Assembly (NCBI GenBank): GCA_025558095.1
Contig: JAIVFI010000034.1
Coordinates: forward strand, 1 to 64,000
Direction of reading: 5' to 3'
DNA length: 64,000 nt
Source of the DNA: Hyaloraphidium curvatum SAG 235-1
Lineage: Eukaryota > Fungi > Monoblepharomycota
Shown here in pieces: positions 29,226-53,706 of the stretch (the stretch's first letter is position 1; each line of letters opens with the position of its first letter). The notes under the pieces were generated by a model, which was given only the letters and a program-made list of their open reading frames with translations, did not search any database and was not told the DNA's origin. The translations under genes were made by a program, and so were the position numbers.

Positions 29226-30122
29226 ATGGGCCGCCTCCTCCTCTGCCTCGCCGCGCTGGTCGCGGCAGCGGCCGCCGCCGCCGGGTCGTGGGTCGCTCCC
29301 GGCGCTCGCCTCCGCTATGCCGACGCCCGTTCCCCCGACAGGCCGGTGCCCGCCGACGAGTTCGACGCCTCCGCGGACGTGGTCGCCGCGTCCCCCGGCG
29401 CGATCTTCAGGCGCAGCTGCGCGGAGTGTGTCGAGGACACCTTTTGGTTGAGTGGCCCCCGCCCGCCCGCGCGACCGCGCTCACCGGCCGCCCGCAGCGA
29501 GTTCAACTACCCCGGCGCGCCCGAGGGACAGGTTGCCTGCGTCGGGCTCGGACCGGAGGACCTGCACGGGCTGTACCGGCGGTACGCCGAGCCCGACCCC
29601 ATCCCGCCCAGCTGGGGCACCGAGACGGCCATGACGATCATCGGCAACATGCCGCAGACGAACGACAACGGTTTCACCGGCTCCCTGAACTCGGTCACCG
29701 TCAGGACGTTCAAGATCACCCTGGCCGCGACCGCCAGGTGCAGGATCACCTCGGTCGTCATGCGGCTCGCGAGCTCGAGCGCGACCATGCCGACGGTGCA
29801 GATCCGCGACGACGTCGGGACCAGCAACCCGGGCTCCACCGTGCTGGACGCGCTCGTGTCTCCCTCCAGGTCGGGATCGAGCGCCGTCGATTACACCTAC
29901 ACCCCGAGGAACGCGAGCACCGTCTACGACGAGGGAAGCTCCTTCTGGCTCTTTGCCACCGGCGGATCAGCGGCCTGGCAGTCCAGCAGCCCCGGCAAGG
30001 GGTACTCCGGGGTCGCCACCGCGGCCGCGAACCGGTACAGCGGCGACAGCGGTGCGAGCTACACGAATTCGTTCTTCCTCCAGACGTTCCGGATCAACGG
30101 CGCCTGCCAGATCCTGTCTTGA
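29226..30122 (+). CDS. Secreted LYRRY-module protein with choice-of-anchor-R-like beta domain
   Basis: Signal peptide, in-frame introns 29288-29341 and 29447-29497, spliced CAECVEDTFCEF..ACVG..LYRRY. Then IIGN..ITSVVMRL..VQIRDD..NPGSTVL..YTYTP..FWL. Confidence 0.75.
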   Translation: MGRLLLCLAALVAAAAAAAGSWVAPGARLRYADARSPDRPVPADEFDASADVVAASPGAIFRRSCAECVEDTFWLSGPRPPARPRSPAARSEFNYPGAPEGQVACVGLGPEDLHGLYRRYAEPDPIPPSWGTETAMTIIGNMPQTNDNGFTGSLNSVTVRTFKITLAATARCRITSVVMRLASSSATMPTVQIRDDVGTSNPGSTVLDALVSPSRSGSSAVDYTYTPRNASTVYDEGSSFWLFATGGSAAWQSSSPGKGYSGVATAAANRYSGDSGASYTNSFFLQTFRINGACQILS

Positions 30123-30399
30123 AATGGAGCAGGTGTGGTCGTGCGAGGCGGATGGGGTAGGACTGGTGATCCTACTCGCGCCCATGCGGCGGCGATGGGG
30201 AGGGCTGGCGATGGTGCAGGACCCTGCTCCACGGACGGGCAACAGAGGCACGCGGGAGCGCCGCAATTGGCACGGGTGAATCGGCAATAGCAAGCACTGT
30301 AGACGCAGAATAAGTACATCCTCCCGTCTTTTTCCGTTTCGCAACGCGGCCAGCGCGTGGTTTGCCACCGCGGATCAGGGCCTCCTGGCGGACGAGGCT

Positions 30400-30944
30400 C
30401 TAGTGGTTGTAGGCATCCGGGTCCACGGGAGCGCTGTCGTTGGGGGACGGTCAGCGTGATCGCGGGGACGAAAGCGCGCGGGCCCAGCCACCTCAGGTCG
30501 ATCTTGACCTTCTCCTTGGGCTCATCCGCACCGTCCGCGCCGGCGGCCGCACTGCCCGACCACCATCGCGATCAGCCATCATTGCCCATCGGATCGAACT
30601 GCGGGAAAGCGGGAAACCCACGCGGCCTTGGGCGCCTTGCTGTGGTGCACGCCCGCCGAGGCGAGCAGCGCCTCGGCGTCCTTGACGGCCCCGCCGTGGT
30701 TGAAGATCCCGTCGAACACGCCGGCACGGTGGTGCTCGACGCCGTGGTCGTCGGCGAGATCGTCGACGTGGGTCCTGTTGCGCACGGGGTCAGCGGCCGC
30801 CGCGGAGAGCGGCGGGGGGACCCACCCGGCGGCCTGCGCCTTGGCAGCCTCCGAGTTCCGTCCGGAGGCAGTATTTTTGAACTGCTTCACGAACTCCTCG
30901 GTGTCGTCCACGGCGGCGGGGCGGGCGGGGGCGTCGGAGGCCAT
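30400..30944 (-). CDS. Small hypothetical protein, 2 introns
   Basis: MASDAPARPAAVDDTEEFVKQF..., splices via GT..AG introns to ...KVKIDLSAPVDPDAYNH*. Confidence 0.55.
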
Positions 30945-31884
30945 TTCTGCGTTCGGTTGTGCGGGAGACGGAGGGACCCTGAGTCCGAAGGGAGCGGGGT
31001 GCGGGCGCCAGGGCCCTTGGCGGTCGGTGGCGCCACTGGTTAGCACTGTGCGTCGCCACTTCCAAAGAACGAGAGAGGAAGCGGGTTCCGCGTAGTTGAC
31101 TTCTCTGAACATTGCATGGCCAGATGCTCGTGTCTCCCGGTGAAAGCCAATCTTATCAACCTGGGAGCTTCAGAGTCCCTGCATTTCGGTGGGCTCAAGG
31201 AACAAGATGCATCCCATTTGCTTGATGCTTGTGGAAGCTCCGATTTGCTGCCAGTGTCCCTCAGGAATGGGACGTGCGGAATGCATATTGGCGCACTCAC
31301 GCGGGACCCTGCCCAGCGACCCCTCTCAACTTCGAAGCGGCGGCGCGCCCCCGGGCCAAGCGGAACCACAGAAAACGCCTTTACCGCACCCGATTTCGTT
31401 TGAGTTGATACTGGCGTTTGGTTTCAAAGGAGTGGGTGGGTAACGTCGACCCTCGGTCCAGAACCAGGGGAAAGGTGACTCGCCCGGGGGAAAACAGGGG
31501 ACCGCTTCTCTGCCTCCATAATCCCCGAACCGGCGATCGTTGTTGCCTCTGCTGATATTGTTGGCCACCGGGGGCCGCCCCGTCCGGGGTCTCGGCCGTT
31601 GCCGCCCGATCGGGCCGCCCGTCCGTTTTGCCGATCTCGATCTGCCATCTGCCCATCTGAAGCCCCCGGTCCCGCGAAGCCCCTCGATCCCTGTGCGGCC
31701 GGACCCCGGGGATAGGTCCAGACCCGTCCCCCGCGTGACTCCTGGTCGTGCGTGCCCAGCAGCTGCCCGCAAAGTGCGCCGATTCGTCGGGCAGCGCTCG
31801 ACCCCACAGCCGCGAGCCCGCGGTTGACGTGGGTGGCTGGGGTGTCCCCTTCGGCCCGCACTCCCGCCGGCTCTTTCCCCCGCG

Positions 31885-33741
31885 ATGGCGCCCGACGCCG
31901 CCGCCGCGGAGCGCGAGGGCCGCGCGAAGAAGCGGCAGTTTGAGGCCGTCCGCACGCTCGGCAGGGGAACCTCGGGTACCGTGAAGCTCTGCCGGTTCAA
32001 ACCCACCGGGGCATTGGTGGCCCTCAAGAGCCTCGTCAAGGCGCACACGGACGGCACGGGCGCCGAGAGCTTCTGGCGGGAGGTCACGGCGCTGCGGACC
32101 GCGGGCAGGCACGAGAACCTGTGCGGTCTGCTGGACGCTTTCGAGACCTCGACGAAATACTACCTGGTGGGTGGTCCGGGCGGCAAGTGCGGCACAAGGG
32201 GGGAGCGGGTGCCGCTGTGGGAGTTTCGGAACAATATCTCGGCCGTCCCATTCGCTTGGCCGGGGCGATAGCCACGGCATGAGCGTGGGCACGCTCGGGC
32301 CAGTCGTTCCTCATTTTTCCATGGCACGTCCTGATCGCCTTTCCGACTACAGGTCCTCGAGTACTGCTCCGGGGGCGACCTCTTCAACCGCCTCGCCAGC
32401 GGAGGCGTCTTCACCGAGGCGCACGCCGCCACCTCGGTCGCCACAATCCTCAACGCCCTCCACTTCCTCCACTCGCACGGCGTGGTCCACCGCGACCTTA
32501 AGCCGGCCAACCTCCTGATGCGTGATTCGTCGCTCAACGCGGCGCTGGTGCTCGTGGACTTTGGCTCGTCGTTCGTCGGCACGGGCGTGCAGGCGTCCGG
32601 GGGCAAGGACGCCATGCAGACGCTCGCGGGGACCCCTTACTACCTCGCGCCCGAGATCGTGCGCGGCAAGCGGTACTCTTCCAAATGCGACCTCTGGAGC
32701 ACGGGCTGCATCGCGTACGAGCTGCTGGCGGGCTGCACGCCCTTCCACTACGCCAGCTCGATCCAGGACCTCTACAAGCGCATCCGCCGCGCGGACTTTT
32801 CCTTCCCCCCCGAATGCGGCTCCGACCTCGCGCGCGACTTTGTCTGCCGGCTCCTGGACCCGGACCCGCGCGCCCGGCCGACGGCGCTCGAGGCGCTGGG
32901 GCACCCGTGGATCCGGACCTACGTGCCGTCGTACTACCTCATGCTCCTCGCGCTCTTCAACCACGAGGCCGACCCGAAGATGTTCGGCCCGCCGCCCGCC
33001 AACGCGACCGACGCCCTGTTCGAGGTGTCGGACTCGGGCGTGAGCATGGAGCGCATGTCGGTCGCCGAACCCTTGCGGCAGAAGTGGGAGGACATTGGCC
33101 GGCCGGGGCCGCTGCAGGTGCCCGTGGTGGACGTGCCGGACACGTTCGTGGCGGACATCAGCTCGGCCGCGCTGCCGGTCGACCCCGCGCGGGCGCGGAG
33201 GGAGGCGGAGGAGCGGATGCTCGTCGCGCTGGAGCAGTCGGGCTTCGTGTGGACGGGGCAGATGGCGGCGGGGGTCGAACAGAGCGTGCTGGACCGGCTG
33301 GTGGAAAAGTCGGGGTTCGTGTGGTCTTCCGGATTCGGCGATTCGCTGCCGGACGAGCACGAGCACGGGAGCGGGGACGAGGATTCGGGAGGCCCGGGGG
33401 ATGCAGGAGGGCCGGGCGGGCCGGATACGGACGGCGTGTCGCGGGTCGGCAGCGACTCCACCGCCGACGCGGTATCGCGCATCGGGAGCGACACCACCGC
33501 GGACGGCATCTCCCGGATCGGCAGCGACTCCACCCGCGTGGAGCGCCGGATCGTGCGCACGGGGACCGAGTCGACCATCGCCGCCTCGGCGGTCGACGAG
33601 AGCGAGACGGACACGATACGGCGGCACCGGAAGGGGGAGAAGCACGGGCATGCGAGGGCGATCACCGTGGACAGCATGGTGTCGGAGTTTGCGGCTTTCG
33701 GGTTGGGGCGGGAGCGGCGGGAGGGGTCGAGTTCGTCGTGA
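31885..33741 (+). CDS. CAMK-group Ser/Thr protein kinase
   Basis: LGRGTSGTV, VALK, VHRDLKPAN, DFG, GTPYYLAPE, DLWSTG. One intron near 32167-32352. Confidence 0.92.
33430..33535 (+). repeat. Three ~36-bp coding tandem repeats (D-G/A-V/I-SR-V/I-GSD-S/T-T-A)
   Basis: DGVSRVGSDSTA DAVSRIGSDTTA DGISRIGSDST. Confidence 0.8.
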
Positions 33742-33949
33742 CTTGGGTGGCGCGTTGCCAGTGTAGTGCGTAGTGATCTAGCTTCACTGTTTCTGAACGG
33801 ATGGCTGGAATGGCGATGATCTGGAGCTCCGTGTGATGGCCGTCCGCCGGGAGACACCAAGGGGCGAGGCGTGCGCCACCCCTTCGCCACCTGAACCACC
33901 ACCGTCGGCCTTGCCCGCCCTATCGTTGCCCGCCCCTTCCACTCCCGCC

Positions 33950-35016
33950 ATGGCCGCCACGGCCACCGTGTCCGCCGACCTCGCCGCGCTGCCGCCCGCC
34001 GCACTGCCCGCGGCCACGGCCGACCTCGACCGCGCCGAGCGCGACCTGCGCGAGCACGGCATCTGCATCGTCAAGGACGTGCTGTCGAAGGAGCAGGTCG
34101 ACGACATCCGCGCGCTGCTGCACCGCTGCATCGCGCAGGACGCAAGGAAGCCGCAGAACGTGCGGTTCGGGCTGGACAACTCGGACCTCAACAAGCGCGT
34201 GTGGAACCTGCCCAGCCGCGACCAGGTGAAGCACGCGGGGTCCACCTCTGTTGAAGTGGCTAACCCTTCCAATGTTACTTGCTGGAACCTGCTTTCTGCT
34301 ACCAGGTGGGTCCCATGGGGCGCACGCTCCTAAAGTAGCTGACCTCATGGTTGTGGCAACAGATCTTCTGCGACCTCGTCACGCACCCCGCCGCCCTGCG
34401 CCTCGTCAAGTCCGTCCTCGGCTGGCCCTGCCTCCTCGGCAACTTCTCCGCCAACGTGGCCCTCCCCGGCGCCGACCCGGGCGTGCTGCACGCCGACCAA
34501 GTCTTTGTCGACGAGCCCTGGCCGCAGAACCCGCAGGGCTGCAACGTCGCCTGGATCTGGGACGACTACACGGAGGCCAGCGGCGCCACGCGGTTCGTCC
34601 CCAACTCGCACAGGCTCAACCGCGGCGTCAGGCCCGAGGAGGCGGACGTCATGGGCATCCCGGCCGTGTGCCCGGCGGGGACCATGGTGGTCTTCGAGTC
34701 GAGGCTGTGGCACCGCGCGGGGCTCAACAAATCCGACAAGCCGCGCGCGGCGGGGTTCGCATGGTACTCGAAGCCCATATACCGGCAGCAGGAGAACTGG
34801 TTCGTGGCCGAACGCCCAGTGGCTTTCCCCCCTCACACTCTGCCGTGCAGGTTCCTATCCCTCAACCCCCGCGTGCTCGAGGGTGCCTCGGACGAGCTCC
34901 TCACGCTGCTCGCGTACCAGACCGTCGGCTTCGGCATGGTCAACGGGCACTCGCCAATGAAGACGTCGTTCGACGAGCAGGACCCGGGCTTCTACAAGGC
35001 GGAGGCCAAGATGTGA
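33950..35016 (+). CDS. Phytanoyl-CoA dioxygenase (PhyH) family 2OG-Fe(II) oxygenase, 2 introns
   Basis: GICIVKDVLS, LHADQ (HxD), GATRFVPNSH, LWHRAG, RQQEN. Confidence 0.85.
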
Positions 35017-35224
35017 GCGGGCGGAGGGAAAGCAGGATGTTGGTCGCGAAGCAGCGCGGTTGGATGTCGTCGGCAGCGAAGGTCAAACGCTTCGTACCGT
35101 TCGAGGTGCCGGGCTAGAGTTCGCAGGGACTTCGGTCCCCATTCACCGCGGGCGGCGCCCCGTGGCCGCCCCGTACTTCGGCCCAATCGATGCACAAAAG
35201 CCCGTAGCACGCCCGAGTTTCTTC

Positions 35225-38200
35225 ATGACATCGCCATCGCGCCCCGTGCCGGAGCTTCCCGGCCCGGCCAACCCCGGTTCGGGCGTGCTCTTCTGCCCCG
35301 CGCCGCTCTTTGCGTCTTCCGTCGGCGGCGTCTCGCCGTGCCTGCTGCAGTGGACGTCGTCGGCATTGTTGCTCCTGCTGGTGCTGGGCGGCGCGTTCGG
35401 ACCGGCCGTCTTCGGCGCGCTGCGGAAGCGGTGGGCGCTGTTCGGACGACGCGGAGCGGGATACGCCCCACTGGGCGACCACGGAGAACCGAGCGCGGTC
35501 GTCGTCGACGGTGCGGACTCGGCGCCAAGTGATGAGCGCACCAACGGCCCGGAATCGCGGGCTGTGGGCGATGTTTGGCCCGTTTCGGACCGACCGGAGG
35601 CCCTTGCCGACTTGGAACGGCCAGCCGCCACTGTGCCTGCCACTCTCGACGAAATCCGCCCCGGGGACGCCGCAGCACCCGGCAAAGGAGCGGGTCGTGG
35701 TGGTGGCGGGGCCGCCCGCGGCAAAGGACACGGAAAGGGTGGGGGTCGCGGCGGTGGTTCAGGCGGCATGGGAGGGAAGGCCGGGAAGGGGAAGTGGGCC
35801 GTGGCGGAAACTTCTTCAGGTCCCGCTCAAGCAGCTGCGAGTACCTTGGACGCGTCGACCCGCGAGGGAGGAATCCCGTTCTCCAATCCGGACCCCGCGG
35901 ACGGAGCCGTTACCGGAGGACCAGACCAGCCGCAAATGGCCTCTCCGATCCCAGGCCGGGGACGCGGTGGGCATGGCGGCGGCGGCGGTCGCGGCAAAGG
36001 CAAAGGCGCGTGGAAGAACGGCCCAAGGAAGCACGGCAAGGACTCTCCGGACCCCCGTTCCCCCATTCCGACACGTTTTCCCCTCCCCCCCGCCCCCGTC
36101 CCCGCCCTCCTCTCCCTCATCGAGAACCTCCTCCTCGCCCTCGCCGCCGCCCACGCCTTCGAGGCCGTGTATGCCGCGCAGCACGCCTTCCTCCCCGACG
36201 CCTCGGACCCCGGCCCGATCCTGCGCTGGGCGCTCAGACCGGCGTGGGCGGTGCTCCCGTGGGCGATGGGGACGACGGGGTGGGGTGGGATGTATTTGCT
36301 TTGGGTGTGGAGGCACGAGGAGGAAGTGCCGGTCGTCAAGGATGGGGTTGTGGAGGTCGAAAGCATGGAGGTGCCGCAGTACGTCGCGCGGTTCAGGCGG
36401 CACGGCCTGCATCTCGCCGCTTTGGGTCTCCTCGTCGTCGAACTGTACCACAGGGTACGTTGGCTCGGCCTGCTGGCCCGGATCGGCACGTCGCCGGGGG
36501 ACTTTGTCGCGTCATTTGGAGCCGGTTTGGCGGTGGCCGCGGGCAAGCTTGGGCTGAACTTTGCCTTCGCTGGCGGACCGGGCCCTGCTTTCCACTTTTC
36601 TGCGGGTGAGGCCCCCGACGGGCTTGCGGGAATGGGCGGCTGGCGCGCCGTCGCGGGCGATGATTGGAGGTCGGTGCCGGTTCCTCCCCTCGGCATCCTG
36701 CGTCTCATCCCCGCCGCCATCCCAGCTTCGTATTCAGCTTCTTCCTCCGCCTCTCCCTCCTCTCCTGCATCCTCCTCCTCGACGCCGCCGTCCTCCTCCT
36801 CTGCCGGCACATCCTCCCCGGCGACCCGGACCCCGAGCTCCCGCCGGACCCCGATGATCTGGACGAGGAGGGCCGTGCGATGCACGGGGTCCGCAAGAAC
36901 ATGGACAGGAGGCCCGAGGGGAGGGAGATGTGGGCCGCGTTCGGGACCGTGCTGTCGTTCGCATGGCCGGCGGGGTGGGGCGGGAGGATGGCGCTGCTGG
37001 GGTGCGTGGGGAGCTTGGTGCTGGGGAGGATCGTCAACGTCCAAGGTAAACGGAAAGTTGTGTCGGGTTCCGTCATTCTGACGTGGCGTTTCTGCCCAGT
37101 GCCGCTCGCATACAAACAGATCGTCGCCGATCTCTCCGATCCGACAAAGACCTCGCTCCCCCTCGGCCCCCTCCTCGTCTTTGCCCTCCTCAAAATCCTC
37201 CAGAACGGCGTCATGGATGCCGTCTCCTCGCTGCTCTGGGTCCCGGTCAGCCAGGGCATAACCAAGGAGGTCTCGGTCCGCCTCTTTGACCACCTCCTCT
37301 CCCTCGGCATGCGCTGGCACCTGAAGCGCAAGCCCGGCGAGATCGGCCGGATCCGCAGCCGCGGCGTGGGCGCGGTGGTCTCGGTGCTGGACACCCTCCT
37401 GCTCCGCGCGGGCCCGATCGTGCTGGATCTCGTGCTGGCCTGCGCCTACTTCTCCGCCATGTTCGACTCGGTGTTTGCCACGATCGTGTTCGGGACCATG
37501 GCGGTCAACCTGTTTGCCTCGTTCAGGATGAGCGGGCTGAGGGTGAGGCACCGCCGCGCGGCAAACCAGCTGGGCAACAAGCTCGCGTCCAAGGCCATCG
37601 ACGTTCTCGGCAACATCGAGACGGTCAAGTACTTTGGCAACGAGAGCCACGAGTCGGCCGAGTATCGCCGGGCTTTCGGGACCTTCCAATCGATGGAGCG
37701 CCGCGCGTCGCTGGCCGACGCGCTGGTCAACGTGGCCCGGGTGGCCCTGGTGCAGGCCGGGATGCTGCTCGGGGCCGTCGAGTGCGCGCGCCGGGTCGTC
37801 GAGTTCCACACGTACGCGGCCTCGGATTTTGTGCTCTACCTGACCTACGTCGGCCAGCTCTACGGGCCCATCAACCAGCTGCAGAGGCATTACCAGACGC
37901 TCAGGCAGTCTGCGATGCAGTTGGGCTCGCTGCTGGAATTGTTGGACGAGGAGCCCGAGGTGCGGGACGCGCCCGGCGCGGCCGAGCTGGATCCGGGCGA
38001 CGGCGGCCTCGAGTTCGACGCGGTGCGGTTCACCCACTTTCCCGACAACCCCAAGCGGCCTGTTGTCGTGGACGGGGTGACCGCGGCCGCGGCCCCCGGG
38101 AGGACGGTCGCGCTGGTCGGCCCGAGCGGGGGCGGCAAGACGACGCTGCTCAAGCTGGCCCTGCGGTTCGTGGACGCCACCGAGGGCACGGTCAGGGTGT

Positions 38201-38865: not shown

Positions 38866-39118
38866 TCCGAAGGCGAAAAACAGCAGTCCTGTCCTGTGTT
38901 GATTACCGGCGGCGAACAACGAAACCTAGGCATCCCCCGGGTACGTCTACCGCTGCTTTCCCGCCCGTGAATTCCGTTGGCTAGAGGGCGGATCAGGTCG
39001 ATCGAGTCGAACAGCAACTGGGGATAGACCCGTCGGGTCCAGACCGCTGACGTGAGCACCCGTCGATAGTCCATCTTCCCCCGTAGTCCACCAAGAACCC
39101 CGGCCGCAGCCCGCGGCC

Positions 39119-39964
39119 ATGCGCTCCCACCCCGTCCTCTTCCTGGCCGTTTTGCTGGTCGCCGTTTTTCAGGTCGAAGGGTGGGCGCCTGCCCGGCGGC
39201 GGCGGACGCCGGCCTGACCCCGCCCGCCGCAGCTCGCCGTACGGGTCCCTCGCCGACCCCGTCGAGCCCCGCGCGCCGAGCCGCACCCTCGTCGCGCAGT
39301 GCTCCGAGTGCCCCGACGACATCGACGTGTTCTGCGAGCCGCACGAGGCCGGCGGCGTGGCGTGCGTGCGGTACGGCGACAACATGCGGTCTCTTTACCG
39401 CCGCTACGCGGGCGACTTCGGCGACGCCTGCGACGTCGGCAACACTTGCAAGTGGGCGAATACCACCTGCTCCGGAGGCATCTGCGTGGCGTGCGGAGGC
39501 ACCGGCGAGCCCTGCTGCGCGAGCGACACCTGTTCCGAGTTCAACACCTGCTCGTCGGGTACCTGCGAGTCGTGCGGAGGTGGGTGGGCCGGGCGGTAAC
39601 CTCCCGTCCTTTCTCGTGCTGACGGGTCCCGACCCAGGCCGGGCCCAATCGTGCTGCCCTACGGGGACGAGCTGCCAAGGGACGGACATGTGCTCCTCCG
39701 GCATGGGAAACACCTGCCGCGAATGCGGCTTGCCTGACGAATCCTGCTGTGCCGACAACACGTGCTTGGCCGGAGCGGAGTGCTACATCCGCGTCTGCAA
39801 GTTTTGCGGCCGTGGGTCCTCCGCCGCCCGGTCCGCGGGTCTGTTGCTGACAAGGCCGTCGCCCCCCCTGCGCAGTCATTGGCTATCCTTGCTGCCTGAT
39901 CAAGACGCCGGAGTGTTCGTTCGGGACCTGCAACATCGGCACCCGTAAGTGCGAAAACTCGTAG
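39119..39964 (+). CDS. Secreted LYRRY-module protein with Cys-rich CGGxGEPCC repeats
   Basis: Signal MRSHPVLFLAVLL, QCSECPDDIDVFCEP..ACVRYGDNMRSLYRRY, repeated C..CGG.GE.CC units separated by short introns. Confidence 0.8.
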
Positions 39965-42373: not shown

Positions 42374-43853
42374 ATGTCCTGGAGCGGCTTCCACGAGGCC
42401 GGCTTCGTGGCCGACGACCGCCACCTCATCGCCGCTGGTGCCGCTTTGGACGCCCTTCTCGCCGCCGCCCGCCGAGTCGAGGCCTCTGCTTCGAAAGACA
42501 CCCGGCAAGAACTCGCCAAGCGCGAGGGAGCCGCTCCGAAAGCCGCGCTGGAGGCGTCCATCTTCCTGTTCAAGGGCTTCCTGCACGAGGAGGCACGAGC
42601 CACGGCGCTGTCCCGCCTTGAAGGCGAACTGCGGGACGAAGACCGCATCGGTTGGGCCTGGCAAGGTTCTTTCTTGGCGTCCAGCAAGCGCGCATTCCAA
42701 TGGGCCAGGCACCGGGGGACGTCAACCACCGCATCATCATGGCCGTCTTCCACCGCGTACTCGCGCTGGGCCGCAGGTTCCTCGGACCTGCGCAAGCGTT
42801 GGAAGTACCCGACCGTGGAGGAGCTGAGGAGGCGTGGCGCCGATATGGGCAGACCGACCCCGTGGGAAGTGCCCCAGGTCGAACCCCTCCTGGATCTCCT
42901 CTGGCTGCCCACCAGATACACCCTGGCGCTCGTCAGGAGCATGGGCTACTCGCGCCCTCTGCGTCGGCGTCTGGCGGAGGATCTCGGTTTCGTCGACGAC
43001 CTCGCGCTCTGCTGCGCCTCCAACGAGCCGACCGTCGTGTGGCAGGGCAATCCCTGGCCATTGCAGGATCCGACCATGCACAGGCAATTTGCACTTGACG
43101 CCACAGCTTTCATGTTCTCAGTGCTGGTGCAGCTCCTGGCCGAACGCCCGGACCCGTGGCGACGTTCCCTATCATGCTCTTTGGTTCCGTGCTGTGGAAC
43201 CCGATGATCAGGGCCAGGGAGCTGATGAAGCTCGTCACGTGGGCCAAACCTCTACGCGTCCGGATCGCGGAGGACGTCGAAACGGTCGAGAACCTCGCTC
43301 TGTGCACGGTATCGAACGTCTCCCTGGTCAGGCTGCGAGCGATCCCGGACTGGTCCCGGACGGCTTCTAAGGAAGATCTCGACGACGCTCTCTACTATAT
43401 CAAGGACTGCATCGGGGATCTCGCCATGCTCGCTTTGGAGCGGCCCAAGCTCTGGCAACGCCGATGCGCCGAGCGAGCCGGGTGCCCCGTGCTCTCGACG
43501 GCGGCAGCGGCGTAGATGCTCGTCAATGCCGTCGCCAGGGAACGGCGTGAGGACGTCAAGGACAACTGGAACTTGCTACTCCGCCACTAGGCCTCCCTCA
43601 AGGAGGCGGTCATGCCAGGAAGCGTCAGGACGCCCACATATCCTGGCTTTCTGATTCGGCGCGACGTCTTCAACAGCGTGACCCAGGAGGCCGATGTCTG
43701 CGATTGCTGCGGTAAGCCGCGAGGAGGCGACGTCAAGCTGATGCGGTGCGGGCGGTGCGGGATCGCGCGTTACTGCGGGGCCGAGTGCCAGCGTGCGGCG
43801 TGGAAGGAGCACAAAAAGGACTGTGTCCAGAGAAGTTCTCCGGTAGAGAAGTG
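42374..43853 (+). pseudogene. MSW-MYND family copy with internal duplication, frameshifts and stops
   Basis: MSWSGFHEAGFVADDRHL. The PLRxRxAED..LAxC..ERP segment occurs twice, TAG at 43513 and 43588, MYND intact. Confidence 0.85.
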
Positions 43854-44017
43854 AATGTATCACATCGATCTCCAAAAGGCCCTCCTTCTTCGGTCGGTCG
43901 GGGAAGCGCACGCAACAATGAGGCGGAGCCCTTGCGCAGCCAGCCCGGCGAAAAGCGCGCGAATCCGGAATCAACCGCCCCGCAACCGCAGGGGCGAAAC
44001 CCGGCCTCGTCCGGCGG

Positions 44018-44076
44018 CCGCCGCTCCCGCAACATGCGTGTCTCCGCCGCTCCCGCAACATGCGTGTCTCCGCCGC
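44018..44076 (+). repeat. 26-bp perfect tandem duplication containing the start codon
   Basis: ccgccgctcccgcaacatgcgtgtct x2 plus a partial third copy. Confidence 0.9.
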
Positions 44077-44598
44077 GGTCCTCCTCGCCCTGCTCGCCGC
44101 GGCCCTCGTGGGGGGCGCGGCCACCGCCCCGGCCCCGCACCTCCGCAGGGTCCGCGGCTGCGCGGAATGCCCCGACTCGCACTACTGGTGGGCCGCGACC
44201 GCCAATGCTGCTCCGGGACGGCTTGCTGACCGTCCGCCGCGTCGGTCGCTTTCCCCGCCGCCCCCATTTCCACCACCAGCGAGTTCCTGGCCGACGGCGT
44301 GACCTGCACCTCGTACGGCGCCGACCGCGGGTCCCTCTACAGGCGGTACGCATCGTCCGACCCCCCTCCGCCTCCCTGCGGCGGGGCAGGAGAGGCGTGC
44401 TGCGCCACCGGCGATCGGTGCGACCCGGGACTCACGGAAAACATCAACCTCACGAGCCCGGTGCCGTGCTCGTGCATGCCTTCTTTCGGGCGGGGGTGGG
44501 GGCATTTCCGGGGTCGGCCTCGGCTGAGCATGCCCGGGAGACGGTGGGCAGCGGCGGGGTCGGGGACGGTGTCGCCGAGCTACGGTATGTCGAATTGA
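44060..44598 (+). CDS. Secreted LYRRY-module protein with short Cys-rich tail (3' end uncertain)
   Basis: Signal MRVSAAVLLALL, intron 44188-44279, spliced CAECPDSHYCEF..TCTSYGADRGSLYRRY..CGGAGEACC. Confidence 0.7.
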
Positions 44599-44867
44599 CT
44601 TCCGGCCCCCATCCTCATTCATCTCCTGCGTCGCTCCATGGCGCAGACCGGTGCCGAAACTGATTCATTATTGCGGCTGACCATCAGCGATCCGGGGCGA
44701 ATGTTGCCGATCTTGGCGTGAACCACCCGGCGGCGAGGGTCCTGACCCACCCGGCGGCAAACGGGCCCAACTGTCCCCCCATTTCGTCGGACATCACTCG
44801 GCGGTCCGGCACCTCGGCGGTCCGGCACCGGGCGAATCGCACCGTCGCCTTGGAACTCTGTCGCAAT

Positions 44868-46440
44868 ATGGCGCCCAACTCTGTCGCCGATCCGGCGCCG
44901 CTGTCGGCCGACTACCTCGTCATCGGCGCCGGCGCACAGGGCCTGGCGTTCCTCGACACGCTGCTGCTCGGCAACCCGTCCGCCACCGCCGTGCTCGTCG
45001 ACCGCTACGAGCGACCGGGAGGCCACTGGACGACGGCGTATCCCTTCGTGCGGCTCCACCAGCCGACGCAGTTCTACGGCGTGGCGTCGGTGCCGATGGG
45101 GTCCGGCCGCGTCGAGGCCAGCGGCGGGAACAAGGGCCTGGCCGAGCTCGCGCCGGCGTCGGAAGTCTGCGTGGGTAACTCTCGCTGCTGCCGACCCGTC
45201 CTCTGCTCACCCTTGAATCGTGGCAGGCCTATTTCAACAACGTGCTGCACGGCAAGCTGCTCCCGACCGGCCGCCTCACCTACCTCCCCCTGCACGACTA
45301 CGACGAGGCCTCCAACTCCGCCGTCTCGCTGCTCTCGGGTGCCCGCACCCCCATCACGGCCAAGAAGATCGTCGACTCGGCCTACTCCCGCGTCGTCGTG
45401 CCGTCGATGCGCCCGCCTCCCTTCCCCGTCGCCCCCGGCACGACCATCGTCGCCGTCAACGGCCTCCCCAAGGCCATCAGGCCCGACGTGCCGCGGTACT
45501 GCGTCCTGGGGAGCGGCAAGACCGGCGTCGACGCCGTCACCTTCCTGATCGAGATGGGCCTCGACCCCGCCCGGATCACCTGGGTGATGCCCCGCGACGT
45601 GTGGCACATCGACCGGGCGTCGATGCAGCCGGGCGGGATATGGCTGCCGCACATGCTCGAGGTTGCGGGCAGGACGGCGGACGCGGTGTCCAAGGCCGAG
45701 AGCATCGTGGACTTCTACCACCGGATGGAGGAGGCGGGCGCCATCATGCGGCCGGACGGGGCAATGGAGCCCGTGTCGGATCACTGCGGCAACATCACCC
45801 GGGCCGACCTGGAGATGATGCGGTCGGTCAAGGACGTGGTGCGGATGGGGAGGGTGACGGCCATCGAGGAGGATGGGATGGTGCTGGAAAAGGGCAAGAG
45901 GGAGATGCCGAAGGGCACGGTCTATGTGGATTGCACGGCCAACGGGCTGGCGAGGCGGCCGCCGGTCAAGGTGTTCCAGGAGGGGCGGATCGTGATCCAG
46001 CCGATCCACTACTGGTAGGCAGCCCGTGCCGTGGCGCCGACGCCGCGCTCACTCATGCATGCCGCCCCCTTCACAGCCAACAGGTCTACTCGGCCGCCGC
46101 CATCGCCCATCTCGAAAACACCTACCCCTCCGACGACGCGCGCAAGAACGCTGCGGCGATGCCGGTCCCGCACCCCGACACCCCCGCCGACGCCGTCAAG
46201 TCGCGCGTGATCGACGCGCGCAACCGCGCCGCGGAGCTGTCGGACCCGCTGCTGCGCAGGTGGCACGACGGGTGCCGGCTCAACTTCTGGTCGTACTTTG
46301 CCCCCGGCATCCTCGACCTGCCGGAGGAGCAGTACGAGGCGGCGTGCAAGGAGAGGGCGGCGGGGCAGCTGGCCGTCGCGGAGGTGCTCGAGGGGCTGCT
46401 GCGGAAGGAGGGGCACAAGCTCTACGATTCCGAGTTCTGA
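44868..46440 (+). CDS. FAD/NAD(P)-binding oxidoreductase (DRxxxPGGHW...YPFVRLHQP family), 2 introns
   Basis: DYLVIGAGAQG, DRYERPGGHWTTAYPFVRLHQP, VLGSGKTG, VDCTANG, QQVYSAA. Confidence 0.85.
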
Positions 46441-46824
46441 GGCGGGCGCTGCGCCGGGTGGTGGCGTGGGCCTTTGATCGACTTCTGCCAACTGGGCTGC
46501 CCGATAGACAGCCGCGCCTTCCGAATGCCGTTTCTCAAGCAGCCGGCCTCGAACCTCCTAGACTTGGAGAGTCCTCCCTGCGTACCGATCAGCACCGCCA
46601 TGCCGCCGTCCGGTCGCGCGGTTCCCGTCTGCGTTGAGGCTGCAGACGAATCGTGGCTCCACGACAATCCAAGGACGCGAAGCCGTTTGTTCTATGGTCT
46701 GTCTGCTGGTCGGACGCGATGCCAAGAACCGCGGGAACTTCGACAAGGGCGTGCCGCAGCGGGTGAATTTGGTGGACCCACGAACCGCCCACGAGTCGGT
46801 CCTTTATCCTTCGCTTCCCCAACC

Positions 46825-47654
46825 ATGAGATCCGGCCTCCCCGTGCTCCTCGCCCTCGCCCTCGCCTTCTCCGGGGCCCTGGCGTGAGTTCCCGCGCGGG
46901 CGGGTGGCGGCGGCGCTGATACCCCGGGCAGGGCGCCGCAGCTGGCCGAGCGCGGCGCCGCGCGCACGCTCGTCGCGCAGTGCTCCGAGTGCCCCGACGA
47001 CATCGACGTGTTCTGCGAGCCGGACGTGGGCGGCCGCGTCGCGTGCGTGCGGTACGCCGACAACCTGCGGTCGCTGTACCGCCGCTACGCGGGCGACGTG
47101 AACGACGTCTGCGGGCCGTCCAACACCTGCAACTCGGCGTCCGCAATCTGCTCGGGGGGCTTCTGCGTCGCTTGCGGGGGCAACGGCGAGCCGTGCTGTG
47201 CCTCGAGCACGTGCTCGACAAACCATTACTGCTACGGGGGCACCCAGTGCAACCCGTGCGGAGGTCGGCCGGCCCGCTCCGCTGACTCCGCCCGGCGCTA
47301 ATCGCCCCCCGCCGCCCCGCGCAGCCCTGGGACAGATCTGCTGCCCGACGCTCGACCCGCTGCTTCGGTGCCACGGCGACGGAGTCGCCTGCAACTGGAA
47401 CAACAACGCTTGCATGGCGTGCGGCACCATCCCCAACGGGCCCTGCTGCTCCGACAACACGTGCTCCTCCATCGGCACGCAGTGCGTGGGGACCGTGTGC
47501 CTGGAGTGCGGCAGTGGGTACCGCTTTCGCCTGCCGCGTGCCGCGTCGCTGACCTCGGGTCCCCGCGACGGCAGGGGTGGGGAAGCCGTGCTGTTCGTCG
47601 GGCAGCCCGTGCCCCACTTCGGGCACCTGCAACGGCTTTGCGCAGTGCGTGTAG
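46825..47654 (+). CDS. Secreted LYRRY-module protein with Cys-rich repeats (close paralogue of the 39119 gene)
   Basis: Signal MRSGLPVLLALAL, RTLVAQCSECPDDIDVFCEP..ACVRYADNLRSLYRRY, CGGNGEPCC repeats. Confidence 0.8.
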
Positions 47655-47916
47655 GGCGCAGACGTGGTCGGGACGTTTGGGCACGAAAGTCTGACCGGGA
47701 AGCTGTGAGGCGACGGAGAAGAGCCCCAATCAGATCTAACTATCTAGCGATGCCTGATCCTGGCGGGGCCCAGCCGGCGTCTGAGGCAACACACGGAATG
47801 CGGTTTGTGGACGGCAGTCGGATCAAACAGAATTGGAACCCCCCGGGTGCCCGCTCGTGGATCGTCTGGCCTGTTGGGGGCGCGTCTGCCGTCCCACCAT
47901 TGCCCCCGTCGGTGAG

Positions 47917-48854
47917 ATGACCGCGGCCCGGCGTGGGCCGGCGCTGCTCGTCGGTGCCTGCCTCGTGTTTCTCTCGCTGCTCGCCTCGCCGCGGAGGAGC
48001 GCCCCGCCGGGCTGGGCCGCGCACTGCGCCGCGTCGCTCGTCGCCGCCGAGGCGCGCTCGGCCGAGGAGCGCCGCCTCCGCGCCGACTTCCTGCGCGCCA
48101 CCGCCGGCCGCAACCTGTCCGCCGCGCCGCGGCTGCCCCTTCGGCGATGGCGGTAAGTGGGCCTGCTTCGCCGAGCTCGCCCGTCCGGGGCACCCGTGCC
48201 TGGTGTATTCCGTGGGACGACTTCTCGTTCGAGACAGAGGTGCGGGACCTCAACCCCGCCTGCGAGGTACACACCTTCGACCCGACAACGGACGCCGCCG
48301 AGTCGTCGCAGCTGGCTGCGCAAGTCAACTCGGCTTTCCGCAGTGTGTGGTGGGGCAACCGCACCGTCGTCTCCATCGCGGAAGAGCTGGGACACCTACA
48401 TCGTCGGATCGACGTGCTCAAGATCGACTGCGAAGGGTGCGAGTTCCTCCCCGGCTTCCTGGGCTTCTTTCAGAACTGCGCACCACGCGGCGGCCGCCCT
48501 GCGATCCCCGTGGGCCAGCTCCTGATCGAAGTCCACGCCACCCGGTTCCCTCCGCCTGCGTGGAACGAAACCCCCACATTCCTCGACTTTTCCCTTATCT
48601 CGGAGCTCTTCTCCTCCATCGAACAATGCAGCTTCCATCTGTTCCACAAGGAACGGAACCACTGGGGCTGCTACGGGTACCCCTTCTCGTTCGCTTCGTG
48701 GGACGCGGCGAGGACGGGGCACTGGCTGGACCACTGCCCCGAGGTGCCGTGGGAGGAGTTCCTGGACGGGGTCGGGAGGGAGGAGGGGAGGCGGGGATCG
48801 GGCGGGGGGGACCCGCGGGGCGGGGATGATGACGGGGACGGCGGGGCCACGTAG
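47917..48854 (+). pseudogene. METTL24/Methyltransf_22-like methyltransferase, apparently frameshifted twice
   Basis: N-terminal TM anchor, GDGGKWAC, CLVYSVG, CEVHTFDPT, IDVLKIDCEGCEF, QLLIEVH. Motifs lie in three frames. Confidence 0.65.
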
Positions 48855-48904
48855 GGAGCCGGAGCTGCAAAAGCCCGGTTCTTTTGGCGGCACACTTCCG
48901 ATCT

Positions 48905-49200
48905 TCACTTCGTCGCCGGGGAGCTCCTCGGGACGCAGTCCTTCTTGTGCTCCTTCTAGGCCGCCCGCTGGCAGGCCCCGGAGTACCGCGCGATCCGGCA
49001 CCGTCCGCAGCGCGTCAAAAGTTACCTCACCTTTGGGCTTTGCGCAGCAATCGCACCAATCCGCATCGGTAGAAAGGTGGCCAGCTTGTATCTCGTGTTT
49101 TCCTCGTGTCCGGGAAGCACAACCGCGCGGCCAGGCACCCCACGAAGCCCGAGAACTGGTCCCAAGCCTCCCGGTAGCGCGTCCTATAGTGACAATAGAA
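48905..49200 (-). pseudogene. 3' fragment of MSW-MYND family
   Basis: DWCDCCAKPKGEV..., frameshifts, AA*KEHKKDCVPRSSPATK* (TAG at 48956-48958). Confidence 0.8.
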
Positions 49201-49276
49201 CGGAAGAGGTTCGAAGAAGGCATTTATGGTACAGCGAATGTACATCAGCAGAGACGCAGATCGGACAACCGTGCCA

Positions 49277-51361
49277 TCAGACCACCCCCACGTCCACCGA
49301 AGACGTCCCCGATCCCGAGCCCGGCCCCTTCCCCGCCCCTCCCTCCAGCGACGAAGCCAGCACCGACGCCACTGACCCCGACACGGCCCTCCCCAGCACC
49401 GCCCCCCTCTCCCCCCGGTCCAGCAGCAGCACGTCCGCGATGAAGTCGCTGTCCGCCGCCTCCTCCCACTCCTCCGGCCCCAGCGACGAACTCGACCCGC
49501 CGCCGGGCAGCGCCGGAACCAGCCCCGACTCGAGCATCGCCGCGTCGAACGCCTCGGATACCCTCCGCGCCTGGAACCCGTACCCCGACGCCAGCCTCCG
49601 CAGCGCCCTCGCGACGGTCCGCGCGCCGCCCTCGAACGCCTTGGCGCGCCGCATCCGCTCCGTCCTTTCCCAGGGCTGCTCGCCCTCGGGGGGCACCCCG
49701 CGGAGGAGGGCGGCCTCGGCGAGGAGCACCTTGCCCGCGGCAAAGGTCGGCGCGAGGAGGACAAAGTGCCCCCTGCGGAGCTCCGGGTCCGCGCGGAGGA
49801 AGCACGCGAGCATCCGCGAGAACCGCAGGCAGCGCGCGGCGCCCGCGGTGCGGAAGCCGGCGGCCAGGAGCACCTCGGATGCGTGGCCCTCGGCGCAGAG
49901 GAGGGACTGCAGCGCGGATTGGGCGTGCATGGGGGTCGGGAAGACGGAGCGGGAGAGCAGCGGGGCGGCGTCGCCGTGGGAGAGGGGGACGCCGAGGTCG
50001 GGGGGGAGCACGGTGGGCGCGGCGTCGGCGCAGGCGGCGAGGGAGGCGGCGGCGGTGCGGAGGCGGTGCGGGTCCGAGGCGTGGGTGCGGAGGGAGTAAG
50101 AGATGAGGTGGCGGAGGTAGTTGGAGAGCTGGAAGAGGCACATGACCGAGGCGCTGCCCTCGAGGGCCGCGCGGGCGAGGGCGCGGGCGGTGCGGGCGAT
50201 GCCGGGGAAGGAGGAGGCGCCGAACTGGATCGAGGGGTCCGAGCCGGCGCGGAAGGCAACCAGGCTGCCGAAGGCCTCTTCGCGGTTGGGGTGGATGAAC
50301 CAGGCCTCGCCGCACGGCACGGGCCACGCGTGCTTGTGAAAGTACTGCGCGATGGTTGGCCGCCCCGTGAAATGGGCCATGCCCGTTTCGGGGGCCGCGA
50401 CGATGATGCGCGCCCGCAGCACCGACTCGCGGTACACCCACGCGTCTGCGTTGGCCGGCGGTCCCGAGGGGAGTAGCCGGAACAGCGCGTCCGTGACTTT
50501 CGCGGCACGGATGATCACGGGCGCCGTCTTTTGCGGCTGCCCGCCCACGACGACCACGTCCAGCAGAGAAACCAGCGTCTGCGCCGTCTCGAGGCCGTCG
50601 ACGCTGCGCGCAAGCAGGAGCTCCCGCACCCGCTCGACGCACCACCTCGAGAACGAAACCCTGGCCCGGTCGCCGTACGACGTCAGCAGACGGGCGCCGG
50701 AGGCGGCCAGGGCAAAGAGCAGCGCTGTGGGGACGCGGCCCGAGTAGACGGCCGAAGGGCGGTTGAACGCCTCCTCAAACGTCTGCCTGTGCACAATGGG
50801 ATACATGGGGTCGTGCGTGTCCCAGTATTCGCGCACGGCGGGGAGCAGCAGGTCCATCGGGTTGAGGGCGCCGCCGAGGTCCGGAGGGGGGTGCAGGGGA
50901 ACAAGCGGGGGAAAGCGGGCCGTAGAGGGGGCAGACGCGGGGAACCCGGCGGGCGGGGTGTCGAACGACGGCGGCGGCGTCTTTGCCGGAGAAGGAAACG
51001 TGGTCTGCGGGCCCGGCGACCCAAGGGCGCCGCCCTGTGCCCTGAAGGCGCCGTGGGGAGCGCCGGCCCCGCCCTCCGGGCCGAACGGGAACGACCTGAC
51101 GCCAAACTGCGACCCCCCGGGCCCGGTGTCCGCCGCCTGCCTCGTTTCGAGCACTATTGCGACGACCGGCACGGGGTCCAGCCGCGAGTCGGTTGCCGTC
51201 ACCGAGTCGTCGTCGCGGCGCCGGGGGTCGCCCCCGCTCCCGCCCTCCCGTGCGCCGCTGCATTCCGAATTTCGCTCATCGCCGCCGTCCCTTAAAGCCG
51301 CGGCCCGCCGCGCCAGGTCGCCCCACAGCGGCGCTTCCGACGGCGCGGGGCTCGGCAGCAT
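49277..51361 (-). CDS. Fungal-specific transcription factor middle-homology (Fungal_trans-like) protein
   Basis: LLLPAVREYWDTHDPMYPIVHRQTF..ALLFALAASGA..LETAQTL..YRESVLRA. No Zn2Cys6 seen and start uncertain. Confidence 0.7.
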   Translation of the reverse strand: MLPSPAPSEAPLWGDLARRAAALRDGGDERNSECSGAREGGSGGDPRRRDDDSVTATDSRLDPVPVVAIVLETRQAADTGPGGSQFGVRSFPFGPEGGAGAPHGAFRAQGGALGSPGPQTTFPSPAKTPPPSFDTPPAGFPASAPSTARFPPLVPLHPPPDLGGALNPMDLLLPAVREYWDTHDPMYPIVHRQTFEEAFNRPSAVYSGRVPTALLFALAASGARLLTSYGDRARVSFSRWCVERVRELLLARSVDGLETAQTLVSLLDVVVVGGQPQKTAPVIIRAAKVTDALFRLLPSGPPANADAWVYRESVLRARIIVAAPETGMAHFTGRPTIAQYFHKHAWPVPCGEAWFIHPNREEAFGSLVAFRAGSDPSIQFGASSFPGIARTARALARAALEGSASVMCLFQLSNYLRHLISYSLRTHASDPHRLRTAAASLAACADAAPTVLPPDLGVPLSHGDAAPLLSRSVFPTPMHAQSALQSLLCAEGHASEVLLAAGFRTAGAARCLRFSRMLACFLRADPELRRGHFVLLAPTFAAGKVLLAEAALLRGVPPEGEQPWERTERMRRAKAFEGGARTVARALRRLASGYGFQARRVSEAFDAAMLESGLVPALPGGGSSSSLGPEEWEEAADSDFIADVLLLDRGERGAVLGRAVSGSVASVLASSLEGGAGKGPGSGSGTSSVDVGVV

Positions 51362-51794
51362 CGCGGCGTCGGCCGCTCCCGGCGCCTGAGCGCCGTCGGC
51401 CGCACTCAGCGCCACGAATCCCGACACGGACAGCGGTTGGGCCGGCTCATGGCGCCGCTGTGGCCGGCCGGCGGGGCGTTGGCGGCGGGGCACGGAGGTC
51501 CCTTCCAGTCATCGCGGCCGGTCGGCCATCACCGCTTCGCCGCCGGCGGGGCTGAGCCCCGGCGCGATCGACTTACGCCGGTACGAGATGGGCAGCAGTA
51601 GGGCTGGGCTGTTTTAGAGCGTACCTGGATGGGCTGTAACTGAGCTGGATGGCGGGCTGGGTCTAAATCGGAAACGGGCTTCGGACTTGGGATATTGGGG
51701 TTCTCCTAGCGGAGCCGGCGATCCAGGTTCCAAAAGAGCGAATCTCGGCGCAAACGAGGTTCTGTGTTTATCATAATGATGCAGGACTGATGTC

Positions 51795-51914
51795 GGCCCC
51801 GTCACGCCAACGGCGTACAGCTTCACCGCAACGGGGACGGTCACCTACACGTGGGTCATCCGGGATGGTCCTCCGGCCCCGGCGCCCTTGCTGAGCCTTC
51901 CTGCTCCGCGCAGC
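51795..51914 (+). repeat. Orphan fragment of the Ig-like repeat of the downstream gene
   Basis: ggccccgtcacgccaacggcgtacagcttcaccgcaacggggacggtcacctacac plus following intron-like sequence matches about 53145-53262 and 53575-53695. Confidence 0.8.
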
Positions 51915-52530
51915 CGAGCGGATAGGGTGTCTCGGTTGCTGCAGGCCTGCGGTGTTCTGCGGGACTGCGGGTCGGCGTGAGCAGGTGGCTCTCAATGGAT
52001 GTTGGCGCTTCGGCAAGGGGGGCTTTCACCGGCCAGTTGGACGGATTGATGGTGCACAGAGCTCGCGATGGATCGTGCTCTCTATGGAATGGCATCGGTC
52101 TATTAGTAGTCTTCGATCCTCAGTCCGCGAGGGAACCCCACCGGGACCTGCGTCAAGCGGAGTCTCGACAAGAGCGGGGGCCCGAGACGCAACGGCGCCG
52201 AAACTGACGAGGGGTAAAGAGGCCAATCTCGATCGTGAATGGCCAGTTGCGGAGCCGAAGGTGTTCCAGGACTTATGTCGATGGCTCTCGTCCAATGCCG
52301 TGCTCCGCCGCGGCCGAGAGGACCCATTGACTTCCCGGACTGCTGCGCCGGCCACCCAAAACAGAGCGTGCAAAACAGCCGAATCCCGCCAAACGCCGGT
52401 CTCCATGCCCTGTCGAAACGCAGGCAAAGTTGCCATGCCGACCCAGTCTCCCTCTACCGCGGCGGCGCGCGTTCGGGCGGGGTTCGGCGTCAGCAACCAA
52501 ATAAGCCGGAGACGTCCTGCAACGCCGGAG

Positions 52531-53706
52531 ATGGCGATCCGGATGCCCGCCGCGCTGCTCTGTCTGCTGGTCGCCATTCTTCTCGTCTGCTGCGGGGTTG
52601 TTGCGTCGCCCAGCGGCGCCCCGCCCGTGTTCCGGCGGTCCTGCGGGGAGTGCGCGGGGACGGACTATTGGTGCGCCCCGCTGCCCGGCTCCTCCCGCAA
52701 CGAAGCTGATTGCAGCGCCCTGCTGCGCCGCGTCACGCAGCGAGTTCGCTTACCCCGGGACGCCCGAGGGCCACGTCGCCTGCTTGGCATACGCCGACTC
52801 GAAGCTGCTCCACCGTCGGTACATTGTGCCCGGGCCGCTCCTGCAGGCCAGGCTGGCCGTCAGGGAGGTGGCAAACGGCGGCAGCCTGGCCCTGGATGCC
52901 ACCAGCTCCGCCACGGGCTTCACTACCCTCACCATCTCCAACGCCGGCAACGCACCACTCGCCGTCAGCGCGGTCGCCATCGCCGGCGACGGTTGGGGAG
53001 CCGCGGAACCCTCGCCGCCGGTCATATCTGCGGGTGGCACCGCCGACCTCGAGATTTACGTCACCCACGGGGGGCCGACCTCGGCGCTGACTACCGCCAC
53101 CCAAACTGCGACATTCACCGTCCTCGCCACGAACCAAGCGGGCGACGCGCCCGTCACGCCGACGGCGTACAGCTTCACGGCCACGGGCACCGTCACCTAC
53201 ACGGTGCGCTGGTCCCGGGCGATCCTCCCGCATCGATGCTGAAGCCTTCCTGCCCCGCGCAGCCGCCCCCTCGGGCCACCCTGACCGTCCGGGAAGTCGC
53301 CAACGGCGGCAGCCTCAACCTGGAAGCCCCGGACTCCCCGTCACGCTTCACCACGCTCACCATCTCCAACGCCGGCGACGCCCCCCTGGCGGTTACCGCC
53401 GTCGCCATCTCGGGCGACGGATGGGGCGCCGCGGAACCCCAGCCCCCGGTCATTTCCGCGGGCGGCACCGCGGACCTCGAAATCTACGTCACCTACGGGG
53501 GCCCGACGACGGCCCTGACCACCGCAACCCCGAGCGCGACCTTCACCGTCTTGGCCACGAACCAGGCGGGCGACGGCCCCGTGACGCCAACGGCGTATAG
53601 CTTCACGGCCACGGGGACGGTCACCTACACTGTGGGTCTCGTGCCCGGGCTGTCGTCCGACATCATTGCTGAACCTTCCCGTCCCGCGCAGCCGGGGCCT
53701 TCCTGA
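52531..53706 (+). CDS. Secreted LHRRY-module protein with two tandem Ig-like (ASH/choice-of-anchor-D-like) domains
   Basis: Signal peptide, intron 52671-52740, spliced CGECAGTDYCEF..ACLAY..LLHRRY. Two near-identical LTISNAGxAPLAV...YSFTATGT repeats. Confidence 0.78.
   Translation: MAIRMPAALLCLLVAILLVCCGVVASPSGAPPVFRRSCGECAGTDYWCAPLPGSSRNEADCSALLRRVTQRVRLPRDARGPRRLLGIRRLEAAPPSVHCARAAPAGQAGRQGGGKRRQPGPGCHQLRHGLHYPHHLQRRQRTTRRQRGRHRRRRLGSRGTLAAGHICGWHRRPRDLRHPRGADLGADYRHPNCDIHRPRHEPSGRRARHADGVQLHGHGHRHLHGALVPGDPPASMLKPSCPAQPPPRATLTVREVANGGSLNLEAPDSPSRFTTLTISNAGDAPLAVTAVAISGDGWGAAEPQPPVISAGGTADLEIYVTYGGPTTALTTATPSATFTVLATNQAGDGPVTPTAYSFTATGTVTYTVGLVPGLSSDIIAEPSRPAQPGPS

Follow-up and report, generated by a model that had tools for sequence, protein, structure and literature searches.

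A constant N-terminal leader followed by variable cargo is a known plan among secreted proteins. In fungi, K2PP effectors and Kex2-processed repeat proteins consist of a signal peptide, a leader ending in [KR]R or L-x-x-R, and a Cys-rich cargo. The motif cut by Kex2 has Lys or Arg at P2 and Arg at P1, with an extended L-x-x-R form, and K2PP pro-domains typically lack secondary structure (PMC8528282). The CRN and RxLR proteins of oomycetes place a constant module after the signal peptide and ahead of diverse C-termini, and they form large, lineage-specific, clustered families. Conotoxin precursors and the proparts of cnidarian nematocyst proteins have a conserved leader with a dibasic end before hypervariable or unrelated mature parts, and wall-anchoring modules (bacterial SLH and LysM; fungal CBM18, WSC, and CBM1) are small aromatic-rich modules carried by unrelated extracellular domains. 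Here, we describe a new domain family on the same plan of constant leader and variable cargo, found in a 64-kb window of DNA at the start of contig 34 in the 31.9-Mb, 55-contig assembly of Hyaloraphidium curvatum. The element in question, here named the LYRRY domain, is a module of about 43 residues with four cysteines that ends in L-Y-R-R-Y. It constitutes a Hyaloraphidium-lineage domain family and organizes at least 150 genes of this aquatic, early-branching fungus.

Five genes of the window, A to E, begin with a signal-like, hydrophobic Ala/Leu-rich peptide followed by a variable linker and the four-Cys module, at the gene starts listed in Table 1. An initial annotation of the window, made from the letters alone, had proposed these five genes with a signal peptide and an L[YH]RRY module, and a profile scan of all six frames recovers exactly these five copies. 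Signal peptides were called by a hydrophobic-run heuristic, and genes A, C, and E were handled exon by exon rather than as joined spliced proteins. A column profile built from 119 unique modules gives the consensus [VIL]-[FY]-x-R-S-C-x-[ED]-C-x(4-6)-[FY]-C-E-[FY]-x-[YFH]-P-G-x-P-x-G-x-V-A-C-V-x(6-12)-L-Y-R-R-Y. The four cysteines are present in 99–100% of the copies and the Glu in 97%, and the tail is conserved at 97% (L), 91% (Y), 90% (R, with K in 8%), 93% (R), and 98% (Y). Likeness between copies ends one or two residues beyond the tail, where the commonest residue at any position reaches at most 36%; the statement that homology stops right after RRY is thus borne out. The dibasic pair of the tail is conserved genome-wide, as [KR]R in 108 modules (91%; RR 83%, KR 8%). 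Synonymous codons vary within the tail, for instance among the Arg codons, which indicates selection on the protein rather than on a DNA signal, and a DNA-level recombination signal in the tail was rejected on this ground. The pair immediately before Cys1 was also considered as a processing site and rejected, because a dibasic [KR]R is seen there in no more than 53% of copies, with A-R in a further 22%; what is conserved is a single Arg. Conserved aromatic positions number seven within the 43 residues, which exceeds what the core of a domain of this size needs.

In the whole genome, at least 150 intact module copies match an 11-sequence profile at E ≤ 1e-4 (from 208 initial candidates), and a stop codon occurs inside one of the 150 matches, so that the module stands far beyond chance. 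Copies lie close to contig ends: on contigs of known length, the outermost 150 kb contain 80% of them where 40% would be expected (p about 1e-16), and the outermost 25 kb contain 31% where 7% would be expected. A neighbouring copy lies within 20 kb of 60 of the 150 copies, and among the local clusters are two of six copies each, one in the opening 18 kb of contig 28 and the other in the opening 33 kb of contig 16. No telomere repeat was found at the start of the window, and the pattern is therefore termed contig-end enrichment rather than a proven subtelomeric location. Identical module-bearing open reading frames (ORFs) were also seen on different contigs (C30:62501 and C48:18050; C44:241377 and C47:75002). 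Either recent segmental duplication or haplotigs left uncollapsed on small contigs may account for these pairs.

The constant leader is combined with a wide range of cargo. In 79 full-length public protein models, the module starts at median residue 36 and is never repeated, and a hydrophobic run precedes it in 70 of 86 models. It is always single and N-terminal; the exceptions with a late start are fused gene models. The 74 payloads compared by BLAST fall into 31 unrelated sets, which puts the kinds of soluble cargo behind the module at 31 or more, and the profile search for further copies with diverse payloads, which the initial annotation had set as a test of a modular secreted system with a constant leader and varied payloads, returned the large family described above. 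Payloads recognized by Pfam include PAN (about 16 members, mostly weak matches), EGF, Stig1, NHL, leishmanolysin (M8 peptidase), and the ALK/LTK glycine-rich domain, among others, while most payloads match no Pfam family. Their median length is 123 residues, and no transmembrane segment, hydrophobic tail, or glycosylphosphatidylinositol-like tail was found in them. The payload kinds first assigned to the five window genes hold: choice-of-anchor R in gene A, Cys-rich repeats in genes B, C, and D, and tandem repeats in gene E. The payload of gene A covers positions 1–154 of the 155 in the NCBIfam choice_anch_R profile (NF041539) with E 5.5e-19 and 68.7 bits, against a cut-off of 30, and the public protein P0024 is also above that cut-off, with 32.5 bits. 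The repeats of gene E have weak Ig-like matches only (HYDIN/VesB and choice-of-anchor D, E about 0.1), and the Cys-rich repeats of genes B, C, and D, which in gene C follow a Pro-rich linker, match no family in the libraries scanned.

Module identity is 0.56 where the payloads of two proteins are related and 0.53 where they are not, and this near-equality suggests that the role of the module is independent of the cargo. The slight excess within payload groups could also be taken to mean that the module has no shared function and is the N-terminus of a single ancestral gene, passively inherited while the 3′ parts diverged beyond recognition; genes B and D, whole-gene duplicates whose 86% identical modules mark them as a local tandem pair, would fit such a history. 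That account is nevertheless highly improbable. A single ancestral sequence cannot have given rise to payloads from separate recognizable families (PAN, EGF, NHL, M8 peptidase, choice_anch_R). The module keeps its invariant residues and an identity of about 53% despite variation at synonymous sites, and 149 of the 150 copies are free of stop codons.

The DNA-level gene structure, counted over 71 unique copies, does not support the proposal in the initial annotation that RRY marks a shuffling junction. The module is split by an intron in 50 of the 71 copies. In 42 of these 50 the acceptor AG is followed at the same place by the last base of a Cys codon and the Glu codon, and for 34 of the 42 the first exon was located, with a donor GT (once GC) 50–172 nt upstream (median 63 nt). 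In genes A, C, and E the intron separates the TG of the Cys3 codon from its final C. This module intron has been lost from genes B and D, which have in common an intron just after the signal peptide instead. Among the copies examined, about 89% keep the reading frame open for at least 30 codons beyond RRY within the same exon. The candidate role of RRY as an exon boundary was therefore rejected, since the frame runs on and the conserved intron lies within the module, and a junction of module and cargo that is usually inside an exon does not fit exon shuffling at RRY.

Outside the genome, the matches sampled come almost all from the same species. When 1.84 billion representative proteins were searched with a 46-sequence profile, 91 clusters matched at E ≤ 0.001, and 61 among them reached E ≤ 1e-10. 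Thirty of the 91 clusters were sampled, the weakest included, and 29 of them are H. curvatum entries named "hypothetical protein DFJ74DRAFT_..."; no other named organism was matched among the 30. A word-indexed protein search yielded three candidates only, all from H. curvatum, and a scan of metagenome contigs with a single consensus-like module found no relative. The sole sampled cluster from elsewhere, P0089, comes from a 954-bp ENA metagenome scaffold (ERZ28614139, scaffold_242474) with 66% G+C. This scaffold shares with H. curvatum both the phase-2 intron of the Cys3 codon and the layout of module plus choice-of-anchor-R-like domain (the latter at 472–945). Against its closest H. curvatum counterparts P0089 reaches an identity of only 37–41%, and its scaffold has no DNA-level match in the H. 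curvatum genome, which indicates that the family is also present in another, uncultured organism and is not the oddity of a single strain. Nothing was found in the literature on the LYRRY family or on secreted proteins of H. curvatum.

The initial annotation did not recognize the module as a named domain, and library searches agree: no Pfam or NCBIfam family covers it, and a profile search of PDB sequences gave no match at E ≤ 10. AlphaFold2 (AF2) models were made for the module of gene B (model 1, 46-row alignment) and for a canonical member (model 2, 78 rows). Model 1 has a predicted local distance difference test score (pLDDT) of 83 and shows one short helix, one hairpin, and a tail helix at pLDDT about 70; model 2 has a pLDDT of 78 and three strands, with the tail at 51–55. 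The module is thus predicted to be a small three-stranded sheet with the L-Y-R-R-Y tail as a C-terminal turn or helix. An even number of payload cysteines in 73 of 87 proteins, together with the invariance of the module cysteines, implies that the latter pair among themselves, probably as two internal disulfides. Fold searches reached no significance, a negative that is not firm for a domain this short: the best E was 1.6 in Foldseek against the PDB, the best Z was 2.4 in the wide VIA search, and the best template modelling (TM) score was 0.51 in the ESM Atlas. A feature-based search of the ESM Atlas yielded nothing usable. The best Atlas row (34 residues, root-mean-square deviation 1.7) recalls the three-stranded antiparallel disulfide sheet of beta-defensin-like folds, from which the module differs in having four rather than six cysteines and no sequence relation, and a TM score means little at such a length. 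The C-x-[ED]-C pair with two further invariant cysteines, and His at frequencies of up to 36% at some loop positions, would also suit a retained metal-binding or redox module with a metal or thiol-disulfide centre. This is quite improbable, as no His position is conserved across the 119 modules, four cysteines in secreted proteins normally form two disulfides, and neither thioredoxin-like nor zinc-ribbon families matched the module in the library and fold searches.

The reading that we prefer, although tentatively, is that the leader is kept on the mature protein as an anchor or adaptor. The LYRRY domain would then act as a payload-independent handle by which diverse extracellular domains of binding type are tied to a single shared partner, for which a component of the cell wall or matrix is the likeliest candidate, and the surplus conserved aromatics with two exposed arginines would supply its binding face. 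New members might arise through gene duplication near chromosome ends and also by exchange of the 3′ part of a gene behind the module. A domain that is predicted to fold and has invariant cysteines would favour retention, as would the tail, where the conservation of L, Y, and Y is no lower than that of the arginines and where the spacing of these three residues (i, i+1, i+4) fits an amphipathic helix such as the one in model 1. The payloads support retention as well, being soluble and of binding type (PAN, EGF, NHL, Ig-like, Stig1) with no anchor of their own. Choice-of-anchor R is a bacterial family named for its pairing with interchangeable surface-sorting signals, and in gene A the module appears to occupy the place of such a signal, an analogy that supports the same reading. 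The age of the family, as judged from the environmental relative with equal architecture and intron, may be counted in its favour. Several observations weigh against this reading. The tail of model 2 may be flexible and accessible to proteases, it is an exact kexin L-x-[KR]-R consensus at a domain boundary, and a strictly N-terminal single copy would be less usual for a binding module than for a pro-region. Moreover, none of CBM1, CBM18, WSC, and LysM has a Pfam match on the module in 92 proteins, in which the one CBM_4_9 match lies in a payload. The likeness to wall-anchoring modules is therefore one of general design, a small aromatic-rich module on unrelated extracellular domains; LYRRY has no sequence or significant fold match to them, is strictly N-terminal and never tandem, and its binding is putative.

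The first of these observations lead to a doubtful but possible alternative, in which the leader is a pro- or sorting domain that escorts the cargo along the secretory route, in aid of its folding, export, or sorting, and is cut off by a kexin-type convertase after L-Y-[RK]-R, much as in the proparts of conotoxins and cnidarian proteins or in the Kex2-processed pro-domains of fungi. The tail fits the Kex2 motif with its L-x-x-R extension (PMC8528282), with [KR]R in 91% of modules and Leu at P4 in 97%. The motif is placed exactly at the end of homology, where model 2 has low confidence, the module is N-terminal and single whatever the cargo, and the genome has at least three strong kexin P-domain genes. 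The composition of the site fits less well. Kex2 cuts K-R better than R-R, and the modules have RR in 83% but KR in only 8%; Tyr at P1′ (98%) and P3 (91%) is at least as conserved as Arg at P1 (93%), which cleavage alone does not suffice to explain. In model 1 the motif lies in a helix, and the leader is a conserved folded domain with four cysteines, unlike typical K2PP pro-domains. Dibasic pairs are not depleted in the payloads (31 observed against 17.6 expected), a count that discriminates little between cleavage and retention. Compared with K2PP effectors, to which the signal peptide, dibasic leader end, Cys-rich cargo, and presence of kexin genes liken it, the LYRRY leader is common to about 150 genes with unrelated cargo, its tail has R-R far more often than K-R between near-invariant Tyr residues, and the pLDDT values of 83 and 78 disagree with a disordered pro-region. 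The two fates can also be combined, in that a sorting domain is removed later.

A further and unlikely reading takes the LYRRY domain as an address signal particular to the lineage, with a dedicated receptor or specialised convertase to read it. This machinery would direct a large and rapidly evolving set of binding proteins, most of them encoded close to contig ends. The destination would be, for example, the autospore wall, the matrix, or another organism. The domain would then be the counterpart in a free-living fungus of the PEXEL and RxLR export signals, with a folded disulfide domain instead of a linear motif. The comparison with RxLR and CRN effectors made in the initial annotation survives as an analogy of layout and extends no further: the column profile of the 119 modules contains none of the RxLR-dEER, LFLAK, and HVLVxxP motifs, the module is of disulfide type, and its junction is not a demonstrated recombination site. 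H. curvatum is free-living and has no known host. The leaders of conotoxins and cnidarian proteins differ in turn, as they are cysteine-free animal proparts for which cleavage is shown, and LYRRY is a folded Cys domain in a fungus; we know of no secretory organelle in H. curvatum.

The family provides a clean natural case of one leader joined to dozens of unrelated cargo domains, a bacterial-type surface domain included. If the leader indeed sorts or anchors its cargo, it would represent a new fungal secretory or surface-display device and a possible display tag. The choice-of-anchor R domain, which is bacterial in type, sits behind the module in several fungal genes and in the environmental relative, and its acquisition from bacteria may date far back. 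In addition, the family exposes numerous errors in public gene models, with genes fused or introns left unspliced. P0012 is fused to an unrelated upstream gene, and its own signal peptide is encoded in the DNA a short way upstream; the upstream parts fused into P0050 and P0036 derive from VIT1 and a short-chain dehydrogenase; and the Cys3 intron is left unspliced in P0064, P0079, and P0073. The public model P0080 is identical to gene B, and the splice model obtained here agrees with it.

Table 1. Positions in the window of the five LYRRY genes and their parts.
Feature	Position	Strand	Remark
Gene A	29226..30122	+	whole gene
Gene A exon 1	29226-29446	+	signal peptide, linker, N-terminal half of module from ~29406
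Gene A intron	29447-29497 (51 nt)	+	GT..AG, phase 2, inside Cys3 codon
Gene A exon 2	29498-30122	+	C-terminal half of module, RRY ending at 29585
Gene A payload	~29643-30101	+	choice-of-anchor R
Gene B	39119..39964	+	public protein P0080, 223 aa
Gene B exon 1	39119-39180	+	
Gene B intron	39181-39232 (52 nt)	+	directly after signal peptide
Gene B module	39291-39410	+	unsplit
Gene B payload exons	~39233-39583, 39637-39812, 39869-39961	+	Cys-rich repeats
Gene C	44060..44595	+	44595 is not a modelled 3′ end
Gene C exon 1	44060-44187	+	
Gene C intron	44188-44279 (92 nt)	+	phase 2, in Cys3 codon
Gene C exon 2	from 44280	+	
Gene C module	~44147-44349	+	short-loop variant, only 25.6 bits
Gene D	46825..47560	+	tandem relative of B; 3′ end approximate
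Gene D exon 1	46825-46883	+	
Gene D intron	46884-46931 (48 nt)	+	directly after signal peptide
Gene D module	46972-47091	+	unsplit
Gene D payload	~46932-47270 and 47330-47520	+	Cys-rich repeats
Gene E	52531..53706	+	whole gene
Gene E exon 1	52531-52670	+	
Gene E intron	52671-52740 (70 nt)	+	phase 2, in Cys3 codon
Gene E module	52630-52822	+	
Gene E Ig-like tandem repeats	~52850-53205, 53257-53631	+	two repeats, separated by an intron

The window has a G+C content of 63–71%, and its introns are short and of the GT..AG type. Genes of the zf-MYND family at 28062–28775 and 43612–43854 (Pfam E 9e-11 and 8e-13) adjoin LYRRY genes A and C on their upstream side, and a further MYND-like reading frame at window positions 1–118 was noted by eye only. 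MYND and LYRRY genes may have been duplicated as one unit.

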